NCBI RefSeq assembly: GCF_963921235.1
Contig: NC_086110.1
Span: forward strand, 13,392,001-13,456,000
Origin: Mobula hypostoma
Lineage: Eukaryota
DNA length: 64,000 nucleotides
Reading direction: 5' to 3'
The notes under the pieces are model-generated. The model was not told the DNA's origin. It worked only from the letters and a program-made list of their open reading frames with translations, and did no database searches. Position numbers and translations under genes: made by a program. Shown piece by piece: positions 1 to 29,700 of the stretch; the first letter of the stretch is position 1; every line of letters starts with the position of its first letter.

Positions 1-104
1 TGGGCTTTGGAGAGGATGGCTTTCGCATGTACATGCTTTTTAGTACTTCCTGGTTTGCAAATTACATATGGGAAATTAAATTCATAAAAGCAAGAGAAAA
101 AGCT

Positions 105-625
105 AATCTTGAGAGAGTTTGCAGATGCTGGAAATCTTGAGGAATGCAAAGAAAAATGCTGAAGAAATTCATTATCTAAGGCAGCATGTATAAATAAACT
201 GTCGATGTTTCTGGCCGAAGCGCTTTAACAGGACAGTAAATGGAGTCAGAAGTTAGAATCAGAAGGTGGGGAAGGGGTAGAGCATGGCAGGTGATAGGAA
301 AAACAAGGTTGGTAAGAAGGTGTGTGGATGATGGGGGATGGAGTGACGTAGAAGCTAGGACGTGGTGGGTGGAAAAGGAAAATGGTGGAGGAAGGAGTCT
401 GATAGGAAGAATCAATGGACCCTGGAAGAAATGGAAGAAGGTGGGGCACCAGTAGAGGTGATGGACAGATCAGAGAAGAGAAGAGAAGAGGTGAAAGGGA
501 GCCAGAATTGGGAGCAGAGAAAAAAAAGAGAGGAGGTGGTGATGAAGTAAGTATCAAAAGTTAGAGAGATCAATGCTTATGCCTTCAGGTTGGAGTCCAC
601 CCAGATGGAACAAAAAGGTAATGAT
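105..625 (-). mobile_element. Penelope-like element remnant
   Basis: Terminal-repeat-like motif (gcagatgctggaaatc...gtcgatgttt), purine-rich linker, and degenerate GIY-YIG 3' end matching the copies at 37.7 kb and 60.8 kb. Confidence 0.6.
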
Positions 626-699
626 ATTTCGAGGGTATTCAGTTGTAAATGTCATAGTGACAAAGGTCTGCTCAGGTCGGTAAAATTAACCTCCTTTGG

Positions 700-3110
700 G
701 ATAATGTTTATATAAGGATACTACAGACCTGTTAGCTTGACATGAGTGGTTCGGAAGTTGTGGGAAGCGATGGTAGGGAAGAGAATACGGAGTATCTGGA
801 TGCACATGACAAGATAGGCCAAAGCAAGCATGATTTTCTGAAAGGAGAATCCTGCCTGACTAACCTATTTCAATTTCTGAGGAAAGTATAAGCAGGGTAG
901 AGAAAGAAAATGTAGTAGATATGGTGTACTTAGATTTTCAGAAGGCCTTTGACATGGTGCCGCACATGAGACTGCTTGGCAAGATAAGAGCCCATGGCAT
1001 TACATAGGAGTCAGTAGCATGGGAGTAGCAGTGGCTGATTGGCAAAAAACAGAGAGTGGAATAAGACCATAAGACAAAGGAGCAGAAGTCGACCATTCGG
1101 CCCATCGAGTCTGCTCCGGCATTTGATCATGAGCTGATCCATTCTCCCATTTAGTCCCAACCCCTGCCTTCTCACCATAACCTTTGATGCCCTGGCTACT
1201 CAGATACCTATCAATCTCTGCCTTAAACACACCCAAAGACGTGGCCTCCACTGCTGCCCGTGGCAAGAAATTCCATAGATTCACCACCGTCTGACTAAAA
1301 AAAATTCTTCGCATTTCTGACCTGAATGGGCGCCCTTCGATCCTTAAGTCATGCCCTCTCGTAATAGACTCCCCCATCATGGGAACAAACTTTGCCACAT
1401 CCACTCTGTCCATGCCTTTCAACATTCGAAATGTTTCTATGAGGTCTCCCTCATTCTGCTAAACTCCAAGGAATACAGTGCAAGAGCGGACAAACGTTCC
1501 TCATATGTTAATCCTCTCTTTCACGGAATCATTCTCGTGAATCTTCACTGTACCCTCTCCAACGTTAGCACATCCTTTCTTAAATATAGAGACCAAAACT
1601 GCCGACAGTACTCCAAGTGAGGTCTCACCAGCGCCTTATAGAGCCTCAACATCACATTCCTGCTCCTATACTCTATTCCTCTAGAAATGAATGCAAACAT
1701 TGCATTCGCCTTCTTCACTACCGATTCAACCTGGAGGTTAACCTTAAGAGTATCCTGTACGAGGACTCCCAAGCCTCGTTGCATCTCAGAACTTTGAATT
1801 CTTTCATCATTTAAATAATAATCTGCCCGTTTATTTCTTCTGCCAAAGTGGATAACCGTACACTTTCCAACATTGTATTTCATTGGCCACTTCTTCGCCC
1901 ATTCTGCGAATCTATCCAAGTCTCTCTGCGGCCTCTCCGTTTCCTCAGCACTACCGGCCCCTCCCGCTATCTTCGTATCGTCAGCAAACTTAGCCACAAA
2001 GCCATGTATTCCATAATACAAATCGTTGATGCACAATGTAAAAAGAAGCGGCCCCAACACGGACCCTTAGGTCCCCTCATAAAGAGATCCTATTCTGGCT
2101 GGCTATTGGTTGCCCGTGGAGTTGCACAGGGGTTGGTGTTGGGGACCGCTGCTTTTTACCATGTATGTCAATGATTTAAACTATGGAATTAATAGACTTG
2201 TAGCTAAATTTGCCGATGATACAAAGGTAGGTGGATGAGTTAGTAGTTTTGAGGAAACATAGAGTCTGCAGAAAGACTTAGCTAGTTAAGGGGAATGGGC
2301 AAAGAAGTGGCAAGTGATATACAATGTTGGAAAGTATATGGTCATGCACCTTGGTGGGAGAAATAAACGGACAGACTATTGGGAAGATGGGGAGATAATT
2401 CAAAATGCAGAGATGCAAAACGACTTGGGAGTCTCTGTGCAGAATGCACTAAAGTTAACCCCTAGGCTCAGTCGGTGTTGAAGAAAAGCAAATGTTGGCA
2501 TTTCATTTCTGGAATATAAGCGGATGGGTGTGATGTTGAGGCTCGAAGAGGCACTCATGAGTCCACACTTGTAGTAGTGTTTGCACTTTTGGACTCCTTA
2601 TATTAGAAAGGATAAACTGACATTGGAGAGGTTTCAGAGAATATTCACGACAATGCTTCCAGGAGTGAAAGGGTTACCGTATGAGCAACGTCTGGCAGCT
2701 CTTGGGCTGTATTCCCTGGAATTTAGGGGCATGCAGCGGGAATCTCATAGAGACATTCCGAATGTTAAAAGGCCTGAACCCATTAGATATGGCGAATCTA
2801 ATTATTTCCCATGGCAGGAGAGTCTGGGACAGGAAGGCACGACTTCAGGATTGAAGGTCGTCCATTTAGACAGTGATGCGGAAAAAGTACTTTAGTCAGA
2901 CGGTTGTTAATATGTGGAATTTGTTGCCGCGAACGGCTGTGGAGGCCGAGTCATTCGGTGTATATAAGGCAGAGATATATATGTTCTTGATTAGCCAGGG
3001 CATCAAAGGGTATAGGAAGAAGGCAGGGGAGTGGGCATGACTCGAAGAATTGGATCAGCCCATGATTGAATGCCGGAGCAGACTCTGCTTCTATATCTTA
3101 TAGTCTTATG
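700..3110 (+). mobile_element. Degenerate CR1 LINE (RT to 3' end) interrupted at about 1064-2076
   Basis: Degenerate YRPVSLT, YLDFQKAFD, GVAQGLVLG and KFADDTK motifs; CR1-type 3' UTR; frame resumes after the insert. Confidence 0.85.
1064..2076 (-). mobile_element. 5'-truncated CR1 LINE nested antisense in the previous CR1
   Basis: ORFs 1545-2060 and 1000-1425 encode the CR1 RT C-terminus; short-repeat tail at about 1064. Confidence 0.85.
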
Positions 3111-3132
3111 GTTTTATATATATATATATGTT

Positions 3133-3365
3133 TTGCGTGGCTCGGTAGCGTAGCGGCTAGCGTATCACTATTACAGCTGCAGTGATCCAGGTTTAGTTCC
3201 CATACATGACTAAATGGTGGGTTTATACGTTTTCCCATGACCGTATGCCTTTTTTAGGCGTTCGGGTTTCCTCTCACATTTGAAAGAAGTACGGCGAGTC
3301 GGCTAATTGGTAACATGGGTGCAATTGGGCGGTACGAACCTATTAGGCCGGACGCCTCAGTAACA
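3133..3365 (+). mobile_element. tRNA-derived SINE (V-SINE-like)
   Basis: tRNA-like head (gtggctcggtagcgtagcggctagcg...ggtttagttccc) and V-core-like ggtttcctctcacat...ggctaattgg. Confidence 0.6.
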
Positions 3366-4582
3366 GTGTTAAATATCTGAAGAAAATTCATATGTTATTC
3401 ATGGCAAACTCTCTGCTTTACCTGAGAATAGATAGTGCGCTCTTCTTGTTGTCGATCTTTCCGAAATCCTATGCTGTCCCGCATATTTAGTGAAACATAG
3501 GCGGTGGTGAGATCAACCGCAGCCTGTTCAGCCTGTTGGGAAAACACATTTAATACTGATAACTGATACAAAGGTCAGTGACCATGAAATACGTTTGATT
3601 CGGAATATCTAATCATAGAAAAGTATTTAAAATGGTTGGAATGATATTTTGTGCGCGTATACTATCGTTGTTCGTATATCATACGGGAGCTGGGATACCA
3701 AACCCATTTCAGGCTAGAAGTTGACACGTTTATTTTAGATTTCCGAACAACCACGTAAAACCATTCTATCAAGCCGATGGATTTCTCAGGTCTGGCCATC
3801 TTTTTTTTTTCCATCTCTTCTGTCACATCCCTTACGCCCCTCCAAGTTTTGTTCATGGGCTTTCTCCGATGCGATTATCTTATGCACCCCATCAAATCAT
3901 TATAATTATTGGCGTGACCAGATTTCGTCCCCATGGTGCATTTAGAACTTGTGACCCTTCAAACTCGCAATATCTACTTTGAGGACATTGGAACAAATGG
4001 CAAGACCTGATGTACTGTTCCAGCCTGGCTGAACTGAGGTAGCGAATACGGAAGGGGCATCTTGCCAACTGTTGAACTGACTGGTGTTGCTGGTGAATCA
4101 ATTAAACTACAATAAAATGAAATAGAGCAGTTAGACATGGCCGCAGTAAGTCGTTAAAATAGCATTTGTTATGGCTGAAGCAATGACATAGCATTCCAGA
4201 GGAATAAAGCGACAGTGCAAAAACCATCTTGAACGATCAGTTTCAACTTAGATTTTTCTCTCAGAAGCGGTCCTTCATTTCGGGAAGTGATACGAACGCT
4301 GATGGAAGTTTTAACGGAGTTCTACTATAATGAAGCCAGTGATATATGACAACCTTGTTTTGGTGATATGAAAAGTTGCTGCAGCAAATATCGTTAGGTA
4401 AATGTAAAATATTGCACTAAAATTGGGAAGATGATTAATGGAACACAAGAAGACATCTTCAGTTTTAGTCAGATAAAATCGACAAAGATTAAATATATTC
4501 TAAAAGAAGAATCCAGGTGGGACAATTTTAATAACATTGAACTGCTGGAAATTTAAAGTAAACAAATAAAACACACAGTAGA

Positions 4583-4900
4583 TCAGGAAACACCAGAGCA
4601 AAGAGAAACATTTGAAGTTGACATTGCTTTCTGTGGAGAGGTGTTCAATCTGAAAGGACAAATATTACTCTTTTCCAAGATGTCGTTAAGATTTTTAATT
4701 TCTGGTTTAAATCGAAAATGAGAGATGACAATACATTTATAGATTTCATGTACTTCTTTCAAAATTGAGGATGATAACCATTCAGCGTAGCCTCGTGGAG
4801 CAGAAGGCGCCTTGAGGAGTTTCGTTACCATTTGTGTTTCATTGTGCACCAGATAGTACACGGTGTTATTGGGAGCATATTCGATTCTATACACTGCTGT
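4583..4900 (-). CDS. Candidate terminal cytoplasmic exon(s), Tyr-rich (VYRIEYAPNNTVYYLV...EIYKCI)
   Basis: Frame open for more than 100 codons in AT-rich DNA. Phase-1 acceptors (cacacag|, cagcag|) are compatible with candidate exon 6. An internal donor ATG|gtaacg is possible. Boundaries uncertain. Confidence 0.4.
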   Translation of the reverse strand, partial: TAVYRIEYAPNNTVYYLVHNETQMVTKLLKAPSAPRGYAEWLSSSILKEVHEIYKCIVISHFRFKPEIKNLNDILEKSNICPFRLNTSPQKAMSTSNVSLCSGVS

Positions 4901-5174
4901 GTGGATCTTTGTTGGGAATCCAGGTTAAAAACTGCATATGAGTTCCAAAACAAGACTTCGTTGCAGTTTTTATCTTGCTTACTGTGCGTTTAAATCAATT
5001 GTAACATATATTGCGAACTGATTCATGCGTGTAATGTATTTTCCCAATGACAACTACACCGCCATTCTCGTAAACCGACATTTGACATCTAAAACATCCC
5101 CGTCTTAGATTTGTATTTAATCATTCGTCACACGAAGAATGATTAACAGCCTAACTTCCCTTAGTCTACATTAC

Positions 5175-5262
5175 GGTTCATCTTAATGTAACTGATATGG
5201 AATCTTGAAAGACTATAGGAAGTAGATTCAACAGGAATATTCAAATAGATCTTGGATATATG
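5175..5262 (-). CDS. Candidate cytoplasmic exon 6 (HISKIYLNIPVESTSYSLSRFHISYIKMN)
   Basis: Acceptor ctctttattttgaag|, open in phase 0 as required; donor C|gtaatg is weak. Confidence 0.4.
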
Positions 5263-5393
5263 CTTCAAAATAAAGAGTTGTCACAGAGTTTCATTCTTCC
5301 CTACTGCGTTCCAAATGTTAGAACAAAATAAATTCATAATGTATCTGCTATATATATACGTCGTTCTGAAAGAAGAGGAACCACTACACGTAC

Positions 5394-5437
5394 CGGCTCT
5401 GCATTCTGACATCTGTCCACAGAACTTGTGCTAACCC
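5394..5437 (-). CDS. IgSF receptor exon 5, first cytoplasmic exon (GVSTSSVDRCQNAEP)
   Basis: Acceptor ttcttttatttcttaag|, donor CCG|gtacgt, 44 nt, phase 1-0, open frame. Confidence 0.7.
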
Positions 5438-5889
5438 CTTAAGAAATAAAAGAAATTATTTGCATTGTAAAAACTGGACTACGTTTAAATACTGTCGCTA
5501 AAATAGAAATTAAAATCATTGAGACATGCACGAGTTCGTCAATGTTCTTTACACATTCATAGTAAGTCCAGACCTACGCCAAGTTGCATACGCTTCAGAA
5601 TATGGATCTGCCATTGTATTGTAAACGGCATTTGAAGTACTCCAAAGAGATATGACGGCATTTATGAACAAGATACAGCCTGTAAATACAGCGAGTGGAC
5701 TGGTGAAATTAATGCACTTAACATCCAGCTTGTGTTGTGCCTGATGGTTATCAATGTAATCATGTTCGTACATCTCAATCTATGTCTAATCATGCTGTAA
5801 TGACACTTATTCTTTTTGAAGTTCAATATCTTTAGTGCATCTATTTTGCACGAATAAAGCTGATATTTCTCAGCGATCAGGGTCCTTAC

Positions 5890-5997
5890 CATGCGAGCTC
5901 TTTAACTTGACTTTCACCAAAACTATTATCAGAGCTAAAATTGCCGATCCGCCCACTGCAAATGCCAGAATCAATTTAGTATCAGCGCCTTGTGGCT
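5890..5997 (-). CDS. IgSF receptor exon 4, connecting peptide plus transmembrane segment (EPQGADTKLILAFAVGGSAILALIIVLVKVKLKSSH)
   Basis: Acceptor tttcttgttttacccctgtag|, donor G|gtaagg, 108 nt, phase 1-1. About 20 hydrophobic residues followed by a basic stop-transfer stretch. Not in the ORF track. Confidence 0.88.
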
Positions 5998-6574
5998 CTA
6001 CAGGGGTAAAACAAGAAACTGTGAAGCATTTATACATCTAAAAACAAATCTACACATGAGAATCAACAACGTAAATTACTTCATAGGCTCCTTTCAAATC
6101 TCACTGCACATATCGGAAAATATATCATGAGACAGGAAATGCAGATTCCCACCTTTGTTATATCACGATAAGGTAAAAAGTTTAAGTGTTGCATTATCAC
6201 AATTTTGCCAAATGATCAGAAGTTTGATACCTTCCAAATACTGCACGAATTCAATTCGTCCTACACTACTTAATATAACGGAAAAAACACGTCAGTTCTT
6301 GAACATCGTTCACACTGAATATTAACTATCAATATTAGTCATTCTTCCTTGTTTGAGTAGCTGTTCAGTTACTGTTCTTAACAAAGTCACATTGACCCCA
6401 TCATTATGACTAATAAGCCATTCCATCTTACAATGAGCGCAAAAGATTCTGAACCTGCTGAAATCCAGAGTAACACATAAAGTCCTGGAGGAACTCAGCG
6501 GATCAGACAGATCTAAAGTGTCGACGTTTATGTCCGAGATCCAACATCATGACTTCATCGAGACACCATCTTAC

Positions 6575-6868
6575 CTTGGTCCAGGAAGTAGCTGAAACTG
6601 GCAGGCACCTTGAGGGAGACATGCGATACCAGACAGGTGTAAACATCTTTTCCCCAAGTAGACTTCCTGGTTTCCAATAAACTAAAAGCTTCGTACAAGC
6701 CGTCCACGCTCCGGTTTGTCACACTTTCTATTCCAGTGCGAATTTGCTTGTTATTTCTTTGCCAAACGATTTCTACTTTCTCCGGGTAGAAGGCAGCCGT
6801 TTTACAAAGGAGCTTTCGAGGAGACGAAAACTCTCCAACAGGAACAATTTCCAAAGGAGTTGGAGGAG
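6575..6868 (-). CDS. IgSF receptor exon 3, C1-set Ig domain
   Basis: Acceptor tttttacccaag|, donor G|gtaaga, 294 nt, phase 1-1. Motifs LLCKTAAFYPEKVEIVW, DGLY and YTCLVSHVSL are canonical C1-set. Confidence 0.92.
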
Positions 6869-7929
6869 CTTGGGTAAAAACAAAGTTATTTTGGGTACTT
6901 TCAATCCATTTCAGAGTAGGTAGGTTCCCTTAATTCCCCGCCAACTGGCATGACCGTCTAACTCTAATTCTTTCAATTTTACGTTCGGTTTATTGTTGCT
7001 CAAGCATTGACACACACCTCTAAGCGAAACATTGCTCTTCTGGGGTAAATTGCAAAATACAGTACATATCATCACACATAGCACATGTAGTTACCATCCA
7101 GCACAGACAGTCACAAAACAAGCAAAATAAAATGGAGTCACCTTAGGGAACGGATGAAAGGAATAGTTCAGAGAATACATATCGATGGCGAATCTAAAAG
7201 GTTCGAAATGAGGAAGACATTCTCTTTGAATGGTATTTGAGCTTCATTCCACAGTTGGTTTGCGGCGGGCGTTGGCTTTGGAACCTGGCTACTTTTGTTT
7301 TTTTCATTTCGTATAAGACTGAGCTACAAAACCCAAATATCACAGATTTCTATAGCACATGGAGTATAATATTCTAGCAGCTCAATTGCTAAGGGAGTGT
7401 TTCAGGTCTTGGGGTTGAGTTTTCAAGTAATAAACATTCAGTAATAGAGCTTCCCTCGAAATGTAAACCATTCCTGCAACAGTTCCCCATATTGAATGTT
7501 GTAAATTATATCCTCCGTGAAACAACCAGGAACGCAAATGCACATTGATATTAAGTTCATTGATTCTGTAGTTCTATTCTTGCTAAAGCCTGCAAAACAT
7601 AGTCGACAGTGACTTGGCACTGCTATAGGATAGTTTGTGAAAATCATGCCTTGCAGAGTATCGAACAGGAACTGAACAACTTCAATTGCACCATACACAG
7701 AGTTTTCTAAAACATGAGCCCAATTTTAAGGTTTTGTAATCATAGACTGCTTCGGCTGCAGCTATGGTCTGTGTCTAACAGGGGGGATTCAATAGTTAGA
7801 TTGCTTTATCTGTTTATAATTCAGTGAGGATTTCACTCTGCTTGCAATGGCCATCCCGCGTTCACGGTTGCCCGATTCCATCTCCCACGCCTATACCGAC
7901 GTCAACGATTTTGGCCTTGTTAAATTCTC

Positions 7930-10900
7930 GGTGAAGGGCAATCCCAAGGTGAAAAAAATCGAAGGCTTTCACAGATACATTAAGCGCAAAGGGATAGCGA
8001 CAAACAGAATTGATCCATTTGAAGATCAGCGTGTTCAACAATGCATGGAGGCGAAAGTGATGGGGGGAGATCTTATCTATTTCCATTTGTTTTTACTCGG
8101 GAGACGTACACAGAGACTATACAACTCATGCAAAACAGAAGCAATGTCATTGCCCACATACGGATTACTGCCTTGAGGCAAATTAGGGTGCAGAAGTCTC
8201 CCGAATATGGCAAGGTGTCCCATCGGACCTCGCTGGAGGCTAGTGCAGAAAGTGAAAGTGCCCCGATAGACGTATTCAAGATATCCTTACTCATGGGTGA
8301 AGTGCCGGAGGACTAGAGTATAACTAATGTTTTAAGACTATATGACTATTGGATATAGGAGCCGAGTTAGGCCATTTGGCCCACCAAGTTTGCTCTGCCA
8401 TTTCATCAGAGTTAACTTTTACCTCTCAGCCCCAATCTCCCGCCTTCTCTCCGTAGTTCTTCATGCCCTGACAAATCAAGAATCTATCAACTACAGCTTT
8501 AAATATCCATAAACGCTTGGTCTACATAGCAGCTTGTGGCAAAAAAAAAATTCCACGGGTTCACCATTCTCTGGCTATAGGCATTCCTCTTCATTTCTTT
8601 TTTTAAAAGGACGTCCCTCTACTGTAAGGCTGCGTCCTCTGGTCTGAGACTCTCCCACCATAAGAAACATCCTCTGCACATCCACACTAAACAGTATTTT
8701 CACCTTCAACAGGTTTCCATGCCATCGCCCCTAATTTATTTTTTTCTGAATTCTAGTGAAAACAGTCCCAGAGCCATAAATCCTCTACATATGACTAGTT
8801 ATTTAATTCTGGAATCATTGTCGTGAACCTACTTTGAACTTACTCCAGTTCCAGTACATTCACAGAGAGGGCCCAAAACTGCTCACAATATGCCATGATG
8901 CCTCACCAGTGCTTTACAAAGTCTCAACATTACATCTTTGCTTTTATATTCTAGTCCTCTCGAAATAAATGCGATCATTGCATTTGTCTTCCTGATCTCC
9001 GACTCAACCAGCAAATTAACCTTTGTGGATTACTTCACACGGACTCCCAAGTCCCTTTGTGACTCAAAGTTTTTTGTATTTTCTCTCCAGTTAGAAAATA
9101 GTCAAAACGTTCATACCCTCCACCAAAGTGGATGGCCACACTGCATCCCATCTGCTATTTGTTTGCCTATTCTCCTAATCTGTCTAAATCTTTCTGCAGT
9201 CTCTCTACCTCCCTGTCCATCTATTTTTATCGTCTGCAGCTTTGCAACAAAGCCATCAATGCCATCAACCATATCACTGACATATAACCTTAAACGAATA
9301 GGTCACAACACAGACCCCTTTGGAACACCATTAGTGACGGGCAGCTAACCAACAAATATTCCCTTTATTCCCACTCTTTGTCTTCTTACCAACCAGCCAC
9401 TGTTTTATCTACCCTAGAATCTTTCCTGTAATGCTTTGGGCTCGTAGCTTGTTAAACAGCCTTGTGTGTGGTACTATGTCAAAGGCCTTCTGAAAATCCA
9501 AGTACACAACAACAGATTCTCCCTATATTTATCTATCCTTTATTCATTCCTTCAAATAATTCAATCAGATTTGTCTGGCGAGAGTTTCTCTTCAGGAAAT
9601 CATGATTAATATGGCCTGTTTTATTATGTTCCTTCAAGTAACCTAAGACCTGATCCTTAATAATGGACTCCAAAATCTTGTCAACCAGTTAGCTGAGACT
9701 GACTGGCCTATAGTTTCTCTTTTCTGCCTGTCTGCCTTCTTGAAGAGTGTAATGACATTTGCAACTTTCCAGTCTTCCAGAACCATTCCAAAATCTATTA
9801 ATTCCTGAAAGACCTTTACTATTGCCTCCACAATCTCATCAGCAACTTTTATAGGGACCCTGGAATGTACATCATCTGGTCCAGGTGAATTACTTACCTT
9901 CAGACCATTTAGTTTCCCAGTAACCTGCTCTCCAATTATGTCTCTAGTTTGCCGCTGTTCAAGATAGACTCTGGGAATAAGCCGGGATATTATAGACCAG
10001 TGGGTATTACAGAGAAGTGGGTAGTTTATTGGAAGCTATTCTAAAGAATGTGACATATACCGTAAATTTTAAGATAGACTGGGCTTGTTTGGGAATAGGC
10101 AACATTGTTTTGTGCAATGTAGGCTGTGTCTAACCAATCTCAAAGAGCTTATTGAACCGGTTACCATTGCTCCTGATGAAGGATAACAGTGGATGTGGTC
10201 AACATGGCTTTTAGCAAGAGCTTTGTAAAAGTTCTTCATGGGGGTGGCGGGCTGATCATGTACGTTCGCTTGGCATTCAGTATGAATGAGTAAATTGCAT
10301 CTAACGTTGGTTTCACGGGAGAATCCAGAGTATGGTAGTGGATGGCTGATCTTTGAATGAAGGCCTTTGACTAGTGGTGTAGGCATTGCTATGAAAGTTT
10401 GCAGAGGGTCATGGAGCAGGTGGGCTGAAAATGGCAGATATAATTTAATGAAAGTAATTGTAAGCTGTTGCACTTTGAGAAGACAAACCAGTCTCGGATA
10501 TACACAGTCAAAGAGACTGGCATTGAGGAGTGCGGTAAAAATAATCTTGGAATATAGATCGATAATTCATTGAAAATGGAGTCAATGACGGATAGTATCG
10601 TAAAGATCGCCTTGGTTATACAGGCCTTCATATATCAGAATATTGAGTGTAGAAGTTGGGATGTTATGCTGAATTGGTATTAGATATAAGTGAGAACAAA
10701 TTTGGAGTATTGTTTGCAGTTCTGGTTACCTATCTGCAGGAAAGTTATCAATATGATTGAATGAGTACAAAGAAAACTTACACGGAAGTGGCATGAATTT
10801 GAGGACATGAATTATCAGGAAAGGTTTAACAGGTTAGGATTGTTTCCATGATTCGTAAGAGAACGAGCGAACTTTTGATTGAGGCATACAAAATTATGAG

Positions 10901-11080
10901 GGATGTAGATATGGTGCATGTAAGCCTGCTTCATCCACTGAGGTTGGGTGAGAATGGAATTGGAAGTCATTGCTTAAGAATGAAATGAGAAGTATTAAAT
11001 ACGAACCTGAGGGGAAACGTCTTCACTCAGACGGTGATGCTACTGTGCAATGAGCTGCCAGCGGAAGTTTTAAATGTAGG
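7930..11080 (+). mobile_element. Degenerate CR1 LINE interrupted by an antisense CR1
   Basis: FHRYIKRK tether motif at about 7960; RT motifs resume after about 9905. Confidence 0.75.
8335..9905 (-). mobile_element. CR1 LINE fragment nested antisense
   Basis: Reverse-strand RT motifs (EDWKVANV in ORF 9643-9831) and CR1 3' UTR near 8340. Confidence 0.75.
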
Positions 11081-11871
11081 TTTGCGCTCGACTCTCTACA
11101 CTTTACTATTAGCCCTATCAAAATTCACCTCGATTTTGAGAGGTTTATATTTCTCCCCATTTTGTATGGTGAAAGAAATATAGATTTTGCTAATCCTGCA
11201 TGACAAAAGTTGGAATGACAATTGCAGTGCATGCGACAAATTGTTACATGATGTTGTGATTAACTGGTTTGGAGCTGGGTATTATTCCTCTCTACTAGTT
11301 GATGCGTAAATGGAGCATTGTGTTGCTGCATACAGACCCTTTGATAGTGATTATTCTATTAAAGTATTAATATTTTGCCTCCTCTGTGATGACGAATCTA
11401 GTTATCCAACTCCAGCTATTCACATTAACATTAACATTATTTCAGCCTTTTGCTTGCAAAACAATCCTAACCTTGCTTGAATGTTAATTCGTTGCATTCA
11501 AAAAGTACCTTCGCGATAATGAGGGTAAAATCGAAAGGTATCACGAACCTTGGACATTAGCTTTAACGGGGAGATTGTTGATGAAGAGGGCTGGACTAGA
11601 GCAGAGGGAAAGAGCCGGTGAGATACGATACAATGAACAGAACCAACTCTATTATGCGCCGAATAGTTGCCACATGAAATGTGATTAATTCTTCTGTTCT
11701 TTTTAAGTCTGAATTTAGAATCTCTGGACTGGGATGTATTTTAACGCGGGAAACAAATGTACTCTAGCCGTTTGTTTTATCCAGTAGAAACTTTTCGTTT
11801 TATCCTCAGCACTAAGTTTAAGTTTGATGTAAAATGCACAGAGCCGAAAATCTCCAAGCAGCCACACTCAC

Positions 11872-12177
11872 CGAACACAGTCAGCTTGGTACCACCTCCA
11901 GTCCCGAAAGATTGTTTCTGATAGTTTGCTTCACAGTAATACAGTCCGGAGTCGGCCAATTTGACATTCCAGAGTGCAAGTTCTCCCCTTCCCCTTTCTA
12001 CCGTAAAATGTCTTCTGTTGTCCGTTTCTAAGAATGCTTTCTCGCCTTCCCTCCACCAACGAACGTCAACAGTACCTTGTGATATTGGAAATTTGCAGAA
12101 CATAGTAACATTCTCACCACCCAGGACTTCCAGTTCCCTTGGTAATTGAGATACTTCGCTTGCAGTTACTTTGACCG
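11872..12177 (-). CDS. IgSF receptor exon 2, V-set domain with germline-joined J motif (VJ-type; NCR3/SIRP/antigen-receptor-like)
   Basis: Acceptor ttatttttccggcag|, donor G|gtgagt, 306 nt, phase 1-1. Protein has B-strand Cys (VTMFCKF), C-strand Trp (VRWW), DSGLYYC and GTGGGTKLTV. Confidence 0.93.
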
Positions 12178-12378
12178 CTGCCGGAAAAATAAGCAACAGT
12201 ATTAATAACAGTTAAATACAGTGAATTAAAACAAAACTACAGACGTATGTCACTGGATATCTAAGAGCCAAAGACGATCGAATAGCTGAACCACTGTAAC
12301 CGAATTTGCTGCAGGCACTCAGGGTTTAATATTCTAAAATATTATTCAGTTCGGAAACGGCATATATAATCAGCATAC

Positions 12379-12433
12379 CTAGACAAGTAATAGCCAGAAG
12401 TGCCATGTACGAAACCGTAAATTTCTCCGACAT
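12379..12433 (-). CDS. IgSF receptor exon 1, leader peptide (MSEKFTVSYMALLAITCL; alternative ATG at 12406)
   Basis: ATG at 12433, hydrophobic leader, phase-1 donor G|gtatgc; splices in frame to the V exon. Confidence 0.8.
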
Positions 12434-12509
12434 CTTACAGAAACCAATCGACAAATTCCTGCAATGCAAGTGGTATTTTAAAGCAAGTGCTGGAGGAGAA
12501 GTTCTTCAT

Positions 12510-12542
12510 GAGGAAATGTATCAGTATGACGTAGGATGACGC
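12510..12542 (-). promoter_or_regulatory. Putative proximal promoter of the IgSF gene: ETS core plus two CRE half-sites
   Basis: GGAA at 12512-12515; TGACG at 12527 and 12537 (10 bp apart); about 80-110 bp upstream of the ATG. Confidence 0.35.
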
Positions 12543-13216
12543 CACGGCAAGGCAGAATAATATAGTTCAAATTTTAACTCTGCGTCCGCTGGAAGGGAGA
12601 AACGAACTCTTACAATTCTAATTTTCACATAGCCCAGCTAGTGCTTTCGTGATTATGCTAGAAATTTTGCCCTCTTACTGAATTTAGGGATTATCGATAT
12701 CTTTATTGAGATATGAATTCAAATCTGCATTCTGCGAATTTTGATGGTAAAGGTGGATCCTTATTACTTCAGCAATTTTCATGAAACAAAAGCATATAGT
12801 GTGAAAACTTCATAAATTTATTCTAGTGACAGATTTCAGTCTGTTTTCTGAAAGTAGACCGCATAGTACTCAGGTTCCTTACACTCTGCAGCGACCAGCT
12901 CGCGTGAAACTCAGCATAATGCAGCAACAAATGCTGACTGTGTTGGAGATAGATTCCGGGTATAGAATATTAATCACACAAAGAGAGAGTTAGTTTTCAA
13001 ACACAAATTATTCAGTTTAATGATGACAGATATTCAAGAGGTACTGCGATAAAATCCATAAAGGGTGCATCGACGAAGGTTCAAATAATTGATTGCAGTT
13101 CCGAGACTCCATTTTAAATTCAATAAACACAAGCAATTCCATGAGGGAAAGGCTGCTCTTTCAATTATCTCCTACATTTCCACAAAGCAAACAGGAGGCA
13201 ATAGGATAGTCCATCG

Positions 13217-15300
13217 AACATAGAACATAGAACATAGAATAGTACAACACATTACAGGCTTTTCGGCCCACAATGTTGTGCAGACCCTCAAACCCTGCCT
13301 CCCATATAACCCCCCACATTAAATTCCTCCATATACCTGTCTAGTAGTCTCTTAAACTTCACTAGTGTATCTGCCTCCACCACTGACTCAAGCAGTACAT
13401 TCCACGCACCAACCACTCTCTGAGTAAAAAAACCTCCCTCTAATATCCCCCTGGAACTTCCCACCCTTTACCTTAAAGCCATGTCCTCTTGTATTCAGCA
13501 GTGGTGAACTGGGGAAGAGGCGCTGGCTATCCACTGTATCTATTCCTCTTATTGCCTTGTACACCTCTATCATGTCTCCCCTCATCCTCCTTCTCTCCAA
13601 AGAGTAAAGCACTTTCTCCCTTTATCTCTGATCATAACGCATACTCTCTGAACCAGGCAGCATCCTGGTAAATCTCCTCTGTACCTTTTCCAATGCTTCC
13701 ACATCCTTCCTATAGTGAGACGACCAGAAATGGACACAGTACTCCAATTGTGGCCTAACTAGAGCTTTATAGAGCTGCATCATTACATCGCAACTCTTAA
13801 ACTCTGTCCCTCGACTAATGAAAGCTAACACCCCATAAGCATTCTTGACTACCCTATCTAACTGTGAGGCAACTTTCAGGGATCTGTGGACATGTACCCC
13901 GAGATCCCTCTGCTCCTCCACACTACCGGGTATCCTGCCATTTACTTTGTGGTCTGCCTTGGAGTTTGTCCTTCCAAAGTGTACCACCTCACACTTCCCC
14001 GGGTTGAACTCCATCTGCCACATCTCAGCCCACTTCTGCATCCTATCAATGTCTCTCTGCAATCTTCGATAATCCTCTAGACTGTCTACAACACCACCAA
14101 CCTTTGTGTCGTCTGCAAACTTGCCAACCCACCCCTCTACGCCCACATCCAGGTCGTTAATAAAAATCACGAAAAGTAGAGGTCCCAGAACAGATCCTTG
14201 TGGGACACCACTACACACAATCCTTCAATCTGAATGTACTCACTCCACCACGACCCCCTGCCTTCTGCAGACAAGCCAATTCTGAATCCACCTGACCAAA
14301 CCTCCGTGGATCCCATGGCTTCTGATTTTCATAATAAGCCTACCGTGTGGAACCTTGTCAAATGCCTTTCTAAAATCCATTTAGATCACATCTACTGCAC
14401 TACCCTCATCTATATGCCTGGTCACCACCTCAAAGAACTCTATTAGGCTTGTTAGACACGTTCTTCCCTTCACAAAGACATGCTGACTGTCCCTGATCAG
14501 ACGATGATTCCCTTAATGCCCATAGATCCTATTTCTAAGAATCTTTTCCAACAGTTTTCCAACACAGACGTAAGGCTCACTGCTCTACAATTACCCGGAC
14601 GATTCCTACAACTTTTTTTGAACAAGGGGACAACATTCGCTTCCCTCCAATCCTCCGGTACCATTCTCGTGGAAAACGAAGACATAAAAATCCTAGCCAG
14701 AGGCTCAGCAATCTCTTCTCTCGCCTCATGGAGCAGCCTGGGGAATATTCCGTCAGGCCCCGGGGACTTATCCGTCCTAATGTATTTAACAACTCCAACA
14801 CCTCCTCCCCCTTAATATCAGCATGCTCCAGAGCATCAACCTCACTCATATTATCATCAGGTTCACTCTCATTGGTGAATAACGAAGAGTATTTATTGAG
14901 GACCTCGCTAACTTCCACAGCCTCGAGGCACATCTTCTCTAATCGGTCCGACCTTCACTCCTGTCATCCTTTTGTTCTTCACATAATTGAAGAATGCTTT
15001 GGATTTTTCCTTTACCCTTCTCACCAAGGCCTTCTCATGCCCCCTTCTTGCTCTTCTCAGCCCCTTCCTAAGCTCCTTTCTTGCTTCCCTATATTCCTCA
15101 ATAGTCCCATCTGATCCTTGCTTCCTAAACCTCATGTATGCTGTCTTCTTCCACCTGACTAAATTTTCCACCTCACTTGTCACCCATGGTTCCTTCACCC
15201 TACCATTCTTTATCTTCCTCACCGGGACAAATTTATCCCTAACATTCTGCATCCATCGAGCAGAAAATTTAACCCGATACAGAAAGATAGGGTTAACACG
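13217..15300 (-). mobile_element. 5'-truncated CR1 LINE
   Basis: ORF 13622-14218 has GVPQGSVLGP and KFADDTK; tail (catagaa)n at about 13217. Confidence 0.88.
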
Positions 15301-16589
15301 CACATAAGTGTCTAACCTGACAGGGCATCAATTGTTATCCACTGAATATTTAAATGCTTCTTGGTTGGTGATGAAACAATAATGACCTTTTCATGTGCTT
15401 CCCATACCATGTCAAACGGCTCACCATTTTGATCGGTTATGTTTCCCAATTTCCACGAAGCGGTGGGGATGTTATGCCGTTTTCACAGAAGCTTTATCAC
15501 CATTATAAAATTGTATCTCCCGTCCTCTCAGATCTGAAATTATGTGCCTGATTGGGGCGTAAAGTTGGTCAGAGGTAACACAAATTTTGTCTCTTAGGTC
15601 CCACGAGAAGTAATTGAGGTCTGTTTGTTGAGGACTTTAGCCGAGAAATGATATCGACATTTGGAACATTATCCTGCTGTGGATCTGGATGAATCGTAGG
15701 AGGCAATTCTAATGATAGATAGCTTAGTTTTACGTTACAGGCAATTTGAGATGCCGAATACAAAAATGTGTCTGCAGCAGAAAACACTATTTCCAGAAGG
15801 TACGTTTTCTGTCGTGATTTCTGCCTTGATCATCTGATATTCCTTTTTCTCGACACGTAAGTACCAAAGATAAGAGTACTGCGATTTGTTCCCCATGAAC
15901 CACTCTCTGTTCTCCATCAGTCCATCCTTCATGGTGTGTAAGAATGGAGCAGTGACTTGGACCAATTACTAAGCACTTAAAAACAAGCTGGCTGATGAAA
16001 ATTGGCTTCGTTTGAGTACGGTTGGGATTGTCGTGCTAGCTCTTAGGTGCCAATTGATTAAGAATGCCCATGCATTTTTAGTTTTAATTGCTTTAGAGAT
16101 AAACCCTACATCTCTATGTTTTCACCAGCATATCGTTAACTGGGGCAGAAACACTCAGGAAAGACTTTTTTTTCTTTTTTTAAGCATTCAGTTTACTGGG
16201 TTTTTTTTTAAATTTTAAATGCTTGAATACATGAAAATTTCAGAAAAATTAAGAAGTGTATAAATGTCAAGCACAGCTCTGGTTTTGCCAAAGGATTGAC
16301 TGTAAATCTAGATTTCTAATTTGTGAGACAATTTTGTCCACCGGACGAGATAATCTTATAATATCGCGCATTTAATTGTCTCTATCTTCATTAAAGACCT
16401 ATTCCAAAATGTTTTCAGCAAGGTTCTTTTAGGATGAATGTTTCAACTGAATGCAGATTATCGTTAATAGATAATAGGGAGCTGAATTGTAGTTAGTCGA
16501 CTGCAAAATTAAAGCTACTATTTGATACTACTGGGTGGAAGTCATAGGAAACAATCAGCAAGCCAGGCAGCGTCTGCTGAGAGAAATAG

Positions 16590-17150: not shown

Positions 17151-19281
17151 GAGAGCTACAGGGAGTACTAGCGTGAATATCAAGTTGATAATTTTTCACT
17201 TTGTCAAGAAGAGAAATGATTTGGATTTTCCCCTTCTCATATAAGATTCCCGATTTTTTCCGCTTAATTTCGGACTGCAAACATCTGCAATCCTGTTTTA
17301 CTTTAAATACCCTGCTTTCCAATTCATGATCTTACTTGATATGAGCTGAATACAAAGCGACATGACCTTAATTCCCCTTCCATTCAAATCTATAACATCA
17401 TCTCCGGAAAACTTTAGATCAAGAGTCAACTCTCGACATTGCTGCTTTTTAATGTTGTCTATCTGTTCCTTGTTCCCTTAACACCGTTTTTAATAGAACA
17501 ACGGACCAGTATAGGACAGGAATAGGACATTCGGGTAAGCTATCTGTCGCGAACACAATGTCAAATAAACTGAATATCTACCTGCTGCGGATGATCTATA
17601 TCGAATAATTCACTGCATGTCTGTGTGGACATTCTGAAGCCTCGTTACTGCAGAATTTCCTTCTAGTTCTTCCTTCTGTATCGTAAAAAAAAATTCATTA
17701 CTGCGAATAAGTTACATATAATTCCCAGCAGTCCTGCATTTTATGCAAATTGAATCTTTTGTTGCAATTTGTCACGTGGTTGTGAGGAAAACCCATACCA
17801 GTTCAGCGATACGGAAGGACTTTGACCGAATTCTCAAATGTATTGTCCAAATCGTCTCTCTCTGGAACTGGTCAAAGTCATCAAATGACAATCTTGCACT
17901 CTGTGACTCGAAGCAGATATTATTACAAGTAACCTATGAGTTCTGATATGATTTGCACCGTTCTCACTTTGCAAGATTTTACCTAATACACAAAAAATAA
18001 TACCAACATTCTGAGAGCTAATATTATCCGGATGAGCAGAAATCACAGGTGATCTTTTAAAGAACTTCCTCATTTAATTAATTAGGAAAGATATTGCTTT
18101 CCCCCTGACATCGGTTTACAATGTCTTTTAATCTGCAAAGTAATTGGTTCTCCATTATGTGCTCTCAGAGAATCAGTCACACATAAATATCAGCTATTTA
18201 GCTGTTTTTTTTTAGAATTGTTTAGTATATTTATTTCCAGAATGAACATGGCGAAGAAACAGGAAGTATAGCCGTTGAAGCACAGCTTTAGAAATATTTA
18301 GCTGACAGAAACAAGATATCAAATAAGTTACTATATTAAACCTATTGACCTACTCTTAAACGTCAAGTGTGATAACACCAGCTGTCTGCAACATACAGCT
18401 TTCAGAGAGAAGCAGTCTTTAACCACATATTTTCCATGATGTTAACAGCAGACTGACGAGTGCAATTCTATTCTCAGGTAGCGTATTAGGTCCCATAAAG
18501 ACAAAGTTCAAATGCATACTTGGTAAACATATAACCATATAGCCATATAACAATTACAGCAAGGAAACAGATCATCTCGGCCCTGCTAGTCCGTGCCGAA
18601 CGCTTACTCTCACCTAGTCCCACCTACGTGCAATCAGCCCATAAGCCTCCATTCCTTTCCTGTCCATATACCTACCATTTTATTCTTTAAATGACAGTAT
18701 CGAACCTGCCTCTACCACTTTTACTGGAAACTCGTTCCACACAGTTACCACTCTCTGAGTAAAGAAGTCCCCCCTCGTGTTACCCCTAAACTTTTACCCC
18801 CTAACTATCAACTCATGTCCTCTTGGTTGAATCTCCCACACTCTAAATGGAAAAAAAAGCCTATCTACGTCAACTCGACCTATTCCCCTCATAATTTTAA
18901 ATACCTTTATCGAGTCCCCTCTCAACCTCCTATGCTCCAAAGTATAAAGACCTAACTTGTTCAACCTTTCTCTGTAACGCAGGTGCTGAAACCCAGGTAA
19001 CATTCTGGTAAATCTTCTCTGTACTGTCTGCATTTTGTTGACATCTTTCCTATAATTCTGTGACCAGAACTGTACACAAGACTCCAAATTTGGCCTTCCC
19101 AATACCTTGTACAATTTTAACATTGCATCCCAACTCCTACACTCAATGCTCTGATTTATGAAGGCCATCATACCAAAAACCTTCTTCACCACCCTATTCA
19201 CATGAGATTCCACCTTCAGTGATCTATGCTCCATTATTCCTAGATCACTCTGTTCTACTGCATTCTTCAATGTCCTACCAT

Positions 19282-21787
19282 ACAGCAGTTATAATGGGTG
19301 ACTTCAATCTACATGTAGACTGGGTGAACCAAATTGGTAAAGGTGCTGAGGAAGAGGATTTCTTGGAATGTATGCGGGATGGTTTTTTGAACCAACATGT
19401 CGAGGAACCGACTAGAGAGCAGGCTATTCTGGACTGGGTTTTGAGCAATGAGGAAGGGTTAATTAGCGATCTTGTCGTGAGAGGCCCCTTGGGTAAGAGT
19501 GACCATAATATGGTGGAATTCTTCATTAACATGGAGAGTGACGTAGTTAATTCAGAAACAAAGGTTCTGAACTTAAAGAGGGGTAACTTTGAAGGTATGA
19601 GACGTGAATTAGCTAAGATAGACTGGCAAATGACACTTCAAGGATTGACGGTGGATATGCAATGGCAGGCATTTAAAGGTTGCATGGATGAACTACAACA
19701 ATTGTTCATCCCAGTTTGGCAAAAGAATAAATCAAGGAAGGTAGTGCACCCGTGGCTGACAAGAGAAATTAGGGATAGTATCAATTCCAAAGAAGTAGCA
19801 TACAAATTAGCCAGAGAAAGTGGCTCACCTGAGGACTGGGAGAAATTCAGAGTTCAGCAGAGGAGGACAAAGGGCTTAATTAGGAAGGGGAAAAAAGATT
19901 ATGAGAGAAAACTGGCAGAGAACATAAAAACGGACTGTAAAAGCTTTTATAGATATGTAAAAAGGAAAAGACTGATAAAGACAAATGTAGGTCCCCTGCA
20001 AACAGAAACAGGTGAATTGATTATGGGGAGCAAGGACATGGCAGACCAATTGAATAATTACTTTGGTTCTGTCTTCACTAAGGAGGACATAAATAATCTT
20101 CCAGAAATAGTAAGGGACAGAGGGTCCAGTGAGATGGAGGAACTGAGCGAAATACATGTTAGTAGGGAAGTGGTGTTAGGTAAATTGAAGGGATTGAAGG
20201 CAGATAAATCCCCAGGGCCAGATGGTCTGCATCCCAGAGTGCTTAAGGAAGTGGCCCAAGAAATAGTGGACGCATTAGTGATAATTTTTCAAAACTCGTT
20301 AGATTCTGGACTAGTTCCTGAGGATTGGAGGGTGGCTAATGTAACCCCACTTTTTAAAAAAGGAGGGAGAGAGAAACCGGGGAATTATAGGCCGGTTAGC
20401 CTAACGTCGGTGGTGGGGAAACTGCTGGAGTCAGTTATCAAAGATGTGATAACAGCACATTTGGAAAGCGGTGAAATGATCGGACAAAGTCAGCATGGAT
20501 TTGTGAAAGGAAAATCATGTCTGACGAATCTCATAGAATTTTTTGAGGATGTAACTAGTAGAGTGGATAGGGGAGAACCAGTGGATGTGGTATATTTGGA
20601 TTTTCAAAAGGCTTTTGACAAGGTCCCACACAGGAGATTAGTGTGCAAACTTAAAGCACACTGTATTGGGGGTAAGGTATTGGTGTGGGTGGAGAATTGG
20701 TTAGCAGACAGGAAGCAAAGAGTGGGAATAAACGGGACCTTTTCAGAATGGCAGGCGGTGACTAGTGGGGTACCGCAAGGCTCAGTGCTGGGACCCCAGT
20801 TGTTTACAATATATATTAATGACTTGGGTGAGGGAATTAAATGCAGCATCTCCAAGTTTGCGGATGACACAAAGCTGGATGGCAGTGTTAGCAGTGAGGA
20901 GGATGCTAAGAGGATGCAGGGTGACTTGGATAGGTTGGGTGAGTGGGCAAACTCATGGCAGATGCAATTTAATGTGGATAAATGTGAAGTTATCCACTTT
21001 GGTGGCAAAAATAGGAAAACAGATTATTATCTGAATGGTGGCCGATTAGGAAAAGGGGAGGTGCAACGAGACCTGGGTGTCATTATACACCAGTCATTGA
21101 AAGTGGGCATGCAGGTACAGCAGGCGGTGAAAAAGGCGAACGGTATGCTGGCATTTATAGCGAGAGGATTCGAGTACAGGAGCAGGGAGGTACTACTGCA
21201 GTTGTACAAGGCCTTGGTGAGACCACACCTGGAGTATTGTGTGCAGTTTTGGTCCCCTAATCTGAGGAAAGACATCTTTGCCATAGAGGGAGTACAAAGA
21301 AGGTTCACCAGATTGATTCCTGGGATGGCAGGTCTTTCATATGAAGAAAGACTGGATGAACTGGGCTTGTACTCGTTGGAATTTAGAAGATTAAGGGGGG
21401 ATCTGATTGAAACGTATAAGATCCTAAAGGGATTGGACAGGCTAGATGCGGGAAGATTGTTCCCGATGTTGGGGAGGTCCAGAACGAGGGGTCACAGTTT
21501 GAGGATAGAGGGGAAGCCTTTTAGGACCGAGATTAGGAAAAACTTCTTCTCACAGAGAGTGGTGAATCTGTGGAATTCTCTGCCACAGCAAACTGTTGAG
21601 GCCAGTTCATTAGCTATGTTTAAAAGGAAGTTAGATATGGCTCTTGTGGCTACAGGGGTCAGGGGGTATGGAGGGAAGGCTGGGTTCTGAGTTGGATGAT
21701 CAGCCATGATCATAATAAATGGCGGTGCAGGCTCGAAGGGCCGAATGGCCTACTCCTGCACCTATTTTCTATGTTTCTATGTTTCTA
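19282..21787 (+). mobile_element. Young 5'-truncated CR1 LINE with uninterrupted ORF2 (partial EN, complete RT)
   Basis: 823-aa ORF with MGDFN, NYRPVSLTS, YLDFQKAFD and FADDTK; tail (tttctatg)n. Confidence 0.95.
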
Positions 21788-26733: not shown

Positions 26734-29700
26734 TGTCATGGTCCCGTCCGGCAATTCCCCATCTTGCTATAACCCAACTTAAGTGGGCCTTAATCCCTCA
26801 GTCTGATTTCCAGTCGTTCCCAGTTCCACTAATTACAGCACACCTGGTTCCCATTAGCGAACATAAGATAAAATCCAGGGCAAGCATTAAAAAGGGCTAA
26901 GAGAGTTGTAAAAGAGCGCCTGAAGGCTTTATGTGTCAATGCAAGGAGCATTCGTAATAAGGTGGATGAATTGAAAGTGCAGATTGTTATTAATGATTAT
27001 GATATAGTTGGGATCACAGAGACATGGCTCCAGGGTGACCAGGGATGGGAGCTCAACGTTCAGGGATATTCAATATTCAGGAGGGATAGACATGAAGGAA
27101 GGGGAGGTGGGGTGGCGTTGCTGGTTAAAAAAGAGATTAACGCAATAGAAAGGAAGGACATAAGCCGGGAAGATGTGGAATCGATATGGGTAGAGCTGCG
27201 TAACACTAAGGGGCAGAAGACGCTGGTGGGAGTTGTGTACAGGCCACCTAACAGTAATAGTGAGGTCGGAGATGGTATTAAACAGGAAATTAGAAATGTG
27301 TGCAATAAAGGAACAGCAGTTATAATGGGTGACTTCAATCTACATGTAGACTGGGTGAACCAAATTGGTGAAGGTGCTGAGGAAGAGGATTTCTTGGAAT
27401 GTATGCGGGATGGTTTTTTGAACCAACATGTCGAGGAACCGACTAGAGAGCAGGCTATTCTGGACTGGGTTTTGAGCAATGAGGAAGGGTTAATTAGCGA
27501 TCTTGTCGTGAGAGGCCCCTTGGGTAAGAGTGACCATAATATGGTGGAATTCTTCATTAACATGGAGAGTGACGTAGTTAATTCAGAAACAAAGGTTCTG
27601 AACTTAAAGAGGGGTAACTTTGAAGGTATGAGACGTGAATTAGCTAAGATAGACTGGCAAATGACACTTCAAGGATTGACGGTGGATATGCAATGGCAGG
27701 CATTTAAAGGTTGCATGGATGAACTACAACAATTGTTCATCCCAGTTTGGCAAAAGAATAAATCAAGGAAGGTAGTGCACCCGTGGCTGACAAGAGAAAT
27801 TAGGGATAGTATCAATTCCAAAGAAGTAGCATACAAATTAGCCAGAGAAAGTGGCTCACCTGAGGACTGGGAGAAATTCAGAGTTCAGCAGAGGAGGACA
27901 AAGGGCTTAATTAGGAAGGGGAAAAAAGATTATGAGAGAAAACTGGCAGAGAACATAAAAACGGACTGTAAAAGCTTTTATAGATATGTAAAAAGGAAAA
28001 GACTGATAAAGACAAATGTAGGTCCCCTGCAAACAGAAACAGGTGAATTGATTATGGGGAGCAAGGACATGGCAGACCAATTGAATAATTACTTTGGTTC
28101 TGTCTTCACTAAGGAGGACATAAATAATCTTCCAGAAATAGTAAGGGACAGAGGGTCCAGTGAGATGGAGGAACTGAGCGAAATACATGTTAGTAGGGAA
28201 GTGGTGTTAGGTAAATTGAAGGGATTGAAGGCAGATAAATTCCCAGGGCCAGATGGTCTGCATCCCAGAGTGCTTAAGGAAGTGGCCCAAGAAATAGTGG
28301 ATGCATTAGTGATAATTTTTCAAAACTCGTTAGATTCTGGACTAGTTCCTGAGGATTGGAGGGTGGCTAATGTAACCCCACTTTTTAAAAAAGGAGGGAG
28401 AGAGAAACCGGGGAATTATAGGCCGGTTAGCCTAACGTCGGTGGTGGGGAAACTGCTGGAGTCAGTTATCAAGGATGTGATAACAGCACATTTGGAAAGC
28501 GGTGAAATGATCGGACAAAGTCAGCATGGATTTGTGAAAGGAAAATCATGTCTGACGAATCTCATAGAATTTTTTGAGGATGTAACTAGTAGAGTGGATA
28601 GGGGAGAACCAGTGGATGTGGTATATTTGGATTTTCAAAAGGCTTTTGACAAGGTCCCACACAGGAGATTAGTGTGCAAACTTAAAGCACACGGTATTGG
28701 GGGTAAGGTATTGGTGTGGGTGGAGAATTGGTTAGCAGACAGGAAGCAAAGAGTGGGAATAAACGGGACCTTTTCAGAATGGCAGGCGGTGACTAGTGGG
28801 GTACCGCAAGGCTCAGTGCTGGGACCCCAGTTGTTTACAATATATATTAATGACTTGGATGAGGGAATTAAATGCAGCATCTCCAAGTTTGCGGATGACA
28901 CAAAGCTGGGTGGCAGTGTTAGCAGTGAGGAGGATGCTAAGAGGATGCAGGGTGACTTGGATAGGTTGGGTGAGTGGGCAAACTCATGGCAGATGCAATT
29001 TAATGTGGATAAATGTGAAGTTATCCACTTTGGTGGCAAAAATAGGAAAACAGATTATTATCTGAATGGTGGCCGATTAGGAAAAGGGGAGGTGCAACGA
29101 GACCTGGGTGTCATTATACACCAGTCATTGAAAGTGGGCATGCAGGTACAGCAGGCGGTGAAAAAGGCGAACGGTATGCTGGCATTTATAGCGAGAGGAT
29201 TCGAGTACAGGAGCAGGGAGGTACTACTGCAGTTGTACAAGGCCTTGGTGAGACCACACCTGGAGTATTGTGTGCAGTTTTGGTCCCCTAATCTGAGGAA
29301 AGACATCTTTGCCATAGAGGGAGTACAAAGAAGGTTCACCAGATTGATTCCTGGGATGGCAGGTCTTTCATATACAGAAAGACTGGATGAACTGGGCTTG
29401 TACTCGTTGGAATTTAGAAGATTGAGGGGGGATCTGATTGAAACGTATAAGATCCTAAAGGGATTGGACAGGCTAGATGCGGGAAGATTGTTCCCGATGT
29501 TGGGGAGGTCTAGAACGAGGGGTCACAGTTTGAGGATAGAGGGGAAGCCTTTTAGGACCGAGGTTAGGAAAAACTTCTTCACACAGAGAGTGGTGAATCT
29601 GTGGAATTCTCTGCCACAGCAAACTGTTGAGGCCAGTTCATTAGCTATGTTTAAAAGGAAGTTAGATATGGCCCTTGTGGCTACAGGGGTCAGGGGGTAT

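Follow-up and report, generated by a model that had tools for sequence, protein, structure and literature searches.

A stretch of 64,000 nucleotides of the Mobula hypostoma genome (GCF_963921235.1, contig NC_086110.1, positions 13,392,001 to 13,456,000), hereafter the window, carries on its minus strand most of a gene with the domain order of an antigen receptor: a variable (V) domain that ends in a joining (J)-like strand, one C1-set constant domain, a transmembrane (TM) segment and a cytoplasmic tail. The gene itself is already annotated in RefSeq as XP_062923464.1 (Mobula hypostoma, 346 aa), and residues 1-303 of that protein correspond, with zero mismatches, to the product of six exons in the window. 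It is likely that it encodes an intact, non-rearranging type I receptor, a tandem paralogue within a multigene family of cartilaginous fish, whose mechanism would be inhibitory. The minus strand of positions 4300-12700 was read directly, and the exons were reassembled by script:

12433-12379, minus strand: leader exon, with the start codon at 12433 and 18 codons plus 1 nt, a split leader ending in phase 1 at a GT donor; 100% identical to XP_062923464.1 residues 1-18.
12177-11872, minus strand: VJ exon of 306 nt, V-set domain (Pfam, E 2.4e-11); identical to XP_062923464.1 residues 19-120.
6868-6575, minus strand: C1-set exon of 294 nt (Pfam, E 1e-13); identical to XP_062923464.1 residues 121-218.
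5997 or 5988 to 5890, minus strand: stalk and TM exon, with two AG acceptors 9 nt apart and a 20-residue hydrophobic helix.
5437-5394, minus strand: cytoplasmic exon 1, 15 residues, ending in phase 0; found by tblastn of the relatives P0002 and P0004, exact match to XP_062923464.1.
3532-3422, minus strand: cytoplasmic exon 2, 37 residues; tblastn E 3e-9 to P0002, exact match to XP_062923464.1 residues 267-303.

All acceptors are AG and all donors GT, and the four introns from the leader to cytoplasmic exon 1 are in phase 1, which is the rule for the exons of immunoglobulin (Ig) superfamily domains. The original prediction for this locus had described a gene of five exons. Its leader, VJ, C1 and TM exons were recovered with canonical phase-1 splice sites, but the fifth one, at 4583-4894, does not belong to the gene. 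That segment was rejected as a cytoplasmic exon, being devoid of any Pfam domain and of any homologue in tblastn with full-length relatives, none of which carries it; the true tail exons are those at 5437-5394 (80% identical to P0002 over 15 residues by tblastn) and 3532-3422. The final 43 residues of XP_062923464.1 are encoded nowhere in the window. Since the RefSeq gene spans 13,181 bp, the stop of the last exon lies about 0.75 kb before window base 1.

Two details of the model admit more than one solution. In the RefSeq model the TM exon begins at 5988 and not at the acceptor 9 nt upstream, 5997, and the extra three stalk residues (E-P-Q) obtained from the latter are kept in a paralogue model of M. 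birostris. Either acceptor may be used, as the gene models of the paralogues differ on these residues. Besides, if the donor of cytoplasmic exon 1 is passed over, translation continues through window 5337-5393 (minus strand) to an alternative ending of 19 residues. The M. birostris orthologue is modelled with this ending, and so is one paralogue of M. hypostoma, which may reflect a tail-less isoform or an annotation artefact shared by these models.

The resulting protein consists of a signal peptide, the VJ-type V domain, the C1-set domain, a short stalk, a TM helix without charge and a tail of about 95 residues. As originally proposed, the C1-set domain and the TM segment are each present just once, and the C1 exon contains the F-Y-P and Y-x-C-x-V-x-H motifs. 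AlphaFold gave two confident beta-sandwich domains and a TM helix (H222-250), with no charged residues within the helix. Outside the membrane the protein has no cysteines other than the two domain pairs, and none of the structural Cys and Trp residues is missing. In the tail, cytoplasmic exon 2 encodes the tyrosine motifs T-A-Y-V-S-L and T-I-Y-S-Q, and two canonical immunoreceptor tyrosine-based inhibitory motifs (ITIMs), LTYATL and SLYADV, are found 23 residues apart in the last 43 residues of XP_062923464.1. Two ITIMs so spaced classically serve to dock the tandem SH2 domains of SHP-1 and SHP-2, and SIRP-alpha signals in this way (PMC12975943).

The VJ exon is unbroken: its Y-Y-C motif is followed by a J-like G-x-G-T-K-L-T-V strand, which leads directly into the GT donor. 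We scanned both strands of window 1-16000 for recombination signal sequences (RSS; heptamer-spacer-nonamer), with the expectation taken from shuffled sequence, and found none flanking or splitting the V exon. These 16 kb contain a single weak RSS-like site, where chance alone would give 2.2; this site is intronic, 480 bp from the V exon. The proposal of a germline VJ in a single exon, with neither intron nor RSS between V and J, therefore holds, and of the rearranging locus with RSS-flanked segments that was named as its counter-case the scan recovered nothing beyond this site.

A gene of this layout could still descend from a rearranging Ig light-chain or T-cell receptor (TCR) gene that was joined by RAG in the germline and gained its TM exon and tail later. 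Germline-joined Ig genes are known in sharks, V and J do share one exon here, the PDB structure matches are lambda chains, and the best single-domain PDB score of the C1 domain belongs to the human Ig lambda constant domain (42.8 bits). However, the same exon layout and tail motifs are common to chimaera, sharks and rays, the J-like motif is non-canonical (with an F three residues before G-x-G), no RSS relic was found in the scanned 16 kb, and lambda, at only some 30%, is no more similar than UrIg2 or SIRP. We consider this origin hardly credible. The V-J-C1 order, the split leader and the phase-1 introns are shared with Ig and TCR genes, but the gene does not have separate RSS-flanked V and J segments. 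It differs from Ig lambda and TCR beta also in having its own TM segment and signalling tail and no membrane-proximal cysteine for chain pairing.

Full-length relatives were obtained with an exhaustive HMMER search using the C1 exon, a search with P0002 (34 proteins) and a profile search with a 15-member alignment, A1 (47 proteins, with family matches at E 1e-38 to 1e-147). All 34 proteins of the P0002 search and all 47 of the profile search come from cartilaginous fish, and so do ten additional single-C1 matches of the exhaustive search, namely those whose clusters were looked up; the look-ups covered a minority of its 150 matches. A profile search at a looser E returned the same 47 proteins; its scored set is made of the 8000 most word-similar candidates, which makes it uninformative on relatives in bony vertebrates. 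The P0002 and profile searches cover the following genera:

Rays: Mobula, Hypanus, Hemitrygon, Pristis and Narcine.
Sharks: Heterodontus, Heptranchias, Scyliorhinus, Chiloscyllium and Mustelus.
Chimaera: Callorhinchus.

In each species, the copies are confined to one chromosome-sized contig. Alignment A1 revealed motifs specific to the family: the VPPTPL hinge, CKTAAFYPE, VYTCLVSHVSL, the J-like motif G-N-G-[ST]-G-[ST]-x-L-x-V and, in the tail, KLTYAxL. The window gene carries these motifs, and it belongs to the family by alignment, tree and profile. The tail has a conserved K-L-T-Y-A-x-L ITIM and, 23 residues on, a second Y-A-[DEQ]-[VL] motif; the pair L-T-Y-A-x-L and x-x-Y-A-[DEQ]-[VL] is conserved from chimaera to rays. 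Some shark relatives have short tails and TM segments bearing R or D, and a second C1 domain is present in the members P0176 and P0181. Ranked by summed score, the true relatives come in the exhaustive search after many shark proteins that NCBI calls 'titin-like' (P0001, for example), which are 900-2700 residues long and contain 6-10 C1-set repeats. These may be misnamed UrIg2-type genes.

We found no description of this family in the literature. Automated annotation had been expected to label the gene only as 'like' something else, which is how it is named, and its paralogues stand under at least 7 different names of this kind. NCBI names within the family include SIRP-alpha-like, NCR3 ligand 1-like (B7-H6-like), Ig lambda-1-like, TCR beta-like, tapasin-related-like, MHC class II-like and PD-L1-like. 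The RefSeq names are unreliable for these genes, and one common name is warranted. The reading of the locus as a chondrichthyan VJ-C1 receptor gains support from these searches, with the addition that the gene is not singular and is one of many tandem paralogues across cartilaginous fish.

In a maximum-likelihood tree of 51 ectodomains, the window gene and XP_072135229 of M. birostris form a 1:1 pair (support 100/100). This pair lies within a 22-member stingray/devil-ray expansion, which falls inside a batoid clade, itself inside an elasmobranch subfamily; a second subfamily contains the chimaera copies. The two Mobula orthologues are 95% identical in V and 98% in C1 (94% is also given for the M. 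birostris orthologue, which is likewise open). Among paralogues, identity ranges from 54 to 78% in V and from 70 to 87% in C1, V being the faster-diverging of the two domains across the family.

The existence of truncated models within the family, the introns full of transposon fragments and the absence from the public record of a transcript contig carrying the protein would fit an unexpressed or decaying copy, that is, a recent pseudogene in a birth-and-death cluster. The six window exons are nevertheless all open with canonical splice sites, the structural residues of both domains are complete, and the open reading frame (ORF) is also kept in the orthologue at the identity given above. For these reasons pseudogenization is very improbable here.

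Comparisons with known receptors point in several directions at once. The whole protein matched PDB sequences of antibody light chains, UrIg2 (9dmx) and SIRP-alpha (2wng, E 1.2e-13) within two orders of magnitude. For the C1 exon, the top PDB sequence match was UrIg2 (E 7e-17, summed over three domains), and IgM and Ig lambda also matched. Per domain, the C1 family profile scored best with the human Ig lambda constant domain mentioned above, while UrIg2 (9dmx) reached 13-24 bits, no better than IgM or lambda. The best single-domain PDB matches of the V profile that extend through the J strand were light chains and TCRs. In structural searches, the best AlphaFold/Swiss-Prot match was SIRP-alpha (E 4e-17), followed by B7-H3, B7-H6, TAPBPR and lambda, and against PDB the predicted structure matched lambda chains best. 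Overall, Ig lambda, TCR, UrIg2 and SIRP-alpha lie at about the same distance, and none stands out.

The gene had been described as distinct from NCR3 (no C1), from SIRP (two C1) and from light chains (no TM), and indeed it lacks the defining features of each. With NCR3/NKp30 it shares a non-rearranging VJ-type V domain on an immune receptor; NKp30, however, lacks C1 and depends on a charged TM residue for signalling, whereas the window gene has a C1 domain, an uncharged TM segment and ITIMs. It does not belong to B7/NCR3LG1, since the constant domain is matched as C1-set (E 1e-13) far better than as C2-set_3 (E 0.048) and a J-like motif is present. Nor is it tapasin-related, as the signal peptide is followed directly by V, without the large N-terminal tapasin domain. 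Like UrIg and UrIg2, it is an elasmobranch gene with a split leader, a non-rearranging single-exon VJ and a C1-type domain (PMC12227049). But UrIg is secreted and has three C domains, UrIg2 has 9-11, and each is a single gene in linkage with the MHC or with the Ig/TCR complex (PMC12227049, Flajnik et al. 2025). The window gene has one C1 and an ITIM tail, and neither the number of C domains nor a specific sequence relationship ties it to them.

With SIRP the gene shares several features of layout: an N-terminal V domain with a J-like G-x-G-T-x-L-x-V strand, a C1-set domain, a single TM segment, an ITIM tail of the alpha type (in the RefSeq product), and inhibitory as well as activating relatives. 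The gene could be the cartilaginous-fish orthologue of SIRP-alpha, with one of the two C1 domains lost, acting as a CD47-type checkpoint of 'self'. SIRP-alpha is the best Swiss-Prot structural match and 2wng a good PDB sequence match, the L-T-Y-A-x-L tail motifs are SIRP-like, P0176 and P0181 do have two C1 domains, and many copies are named SIRP-alpha-like by NCBI. However, the SIRP ectodomain consists of one V-set and two C1-set domains (PMC12975943), and there is one C1 exon between V and TM in the window gene. Ig lambda, UrIg2 and IgM constant domains score equally well or better, the identity to SIRP-alpha is only about 17-18%, and a large tandem family with dozens of fast-evolving paralogues takes the place of one conserved gene. 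We regard SIRP-alpha orthology as unlikely.

PRARP genes, described in bony vertebrates, offer another possible home. These non-rearranging VJ-C1-TM-tail genes are reported to have been first described in chicken (PRARPA/B) by Fu and co-workers in 2019. The window gene might be a PRARP member, which would extend non-rearranging VJ-C1-TM genes of that group to cartilaginous fish. Among the families compared, PRARP alone has a reported layout, V(J)-C1-TM-tail, that equals that of the window gene, and a passage of PMC10751288 cites PRARP as a VJ gene. This likeness, however, is one of described layout, and the window family was seen only in cartilaginous fish, where all relatives from the profile search and the looked-up single-C1 matches belong (the look-ups covered a minority of the 150 matches). 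We find membership in PRARP improbable.

In type, the gene is a further non-rearranging VJ-C1 immunoreceptor of the SIRP/PRARP type, a kind already known. We read it as the inhibitory type within a family of SIRP-like paired receptors, its function being inferred. The inhibitory side of this reading follows from the tail, which has two ITIMs at SHP-docking spacing while some shark relatives have short tails and R or D in the TM segment. A short tail with a charged TM segment is a hallmark of activating partners, which borrow an adaptor with an immunoreceptor tyrosine-based activation motif. ITIMs recruit SHP-1 and SHP-2, and SIRP-alpha and SIRP-beta form such a paired-receptor system (PMC12975943).

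We suggest that the V domain would bind a ligand, and that Src-family kinases would phosphorylate the tail tyrosines, those of the two ITIMs and of the upstream T-x-Y-x-x-L type motifs. The phosphorylated motifs could then recruit phosphatases of the SHP-1/SHP-2 type, dampening the activation of the receptor-bearing cell, as with SIRP-alpha. The activating side of the paired system would be supplied by the short-tailed relatives, which have a charged TM segment, and the diversity of V domains would be generated by gene duplication.

Some observations weigh against this reading. The exon with both canonical ITIMs is outside the window and known from the RefSeq model alone, and the M. birostris orthologue model terminates by read-through after cytoplasmic exon 1, which makes a tail-less isoform or a modelling artefact possible. 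The missing transcript contig counts on this side too. What was observed is the architecture; the signalling, the ligand and the expression are inferred.

No further Ig exons or paralogues were found by tblastn in the 64-kb window, the remainder of which consists of LINE and Ty3/gypsy debris. On the plus strand, two copies of one LINE with endonuclease and reverse transcriptase (19219-21690 and 26962-29721) are 99.4% identical over 2.5 kb, and the second copy retains an ORF of 919 residues; therefore, the element was recently active or duplicated. A GC-rich block (30000-34400, plus strand; 53% versus about 42% elsewhere) holds the integrase end of a Ty3/gypsy-type element with SH3_Tf2-1 and chromo domains. 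On the minus strand, positions 56613-56729 have a weak match (E 0.04-0.17) to the last, ITIM-bearing exon of the receptor family, with the ITIM tyrosine lost. This could be the remnant of a tail exon from the next upstream paralogue, or a chance match.

Non-rearranging V-J-C1 genes are the main comparative material on what the RAG transposon invaded, and the discussion of pre-RAG receptors rests so far on few genes, namely NKp30, SIRP, PRARP, UrIg and UrIg2. Somewhat doubtfully, we raise the idea that the present family is a germline VJ-C1 paired-receptor lineage spread across cartilaginous fish, which split off earlier than the Ig/TCR, UrIg and SIRP/PRARP lines or alongside them. If this is true, its V-C1 unit would be a living sample of the pre-RAG receptor. 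The unit would then already have been put to use in innate recognition, signalling through ITIMs and charged TM residues, and duplication of genes, not rearrangement, would have diversified its V domains. An extensive VJ-C1 family of the oldest jawed vertebrates that looks expressed and includes both inhibitory and activating members would add many more data points to this discussion, and would offer a ready system on whether VJ-C1 domains dimerise like antigen receptors.

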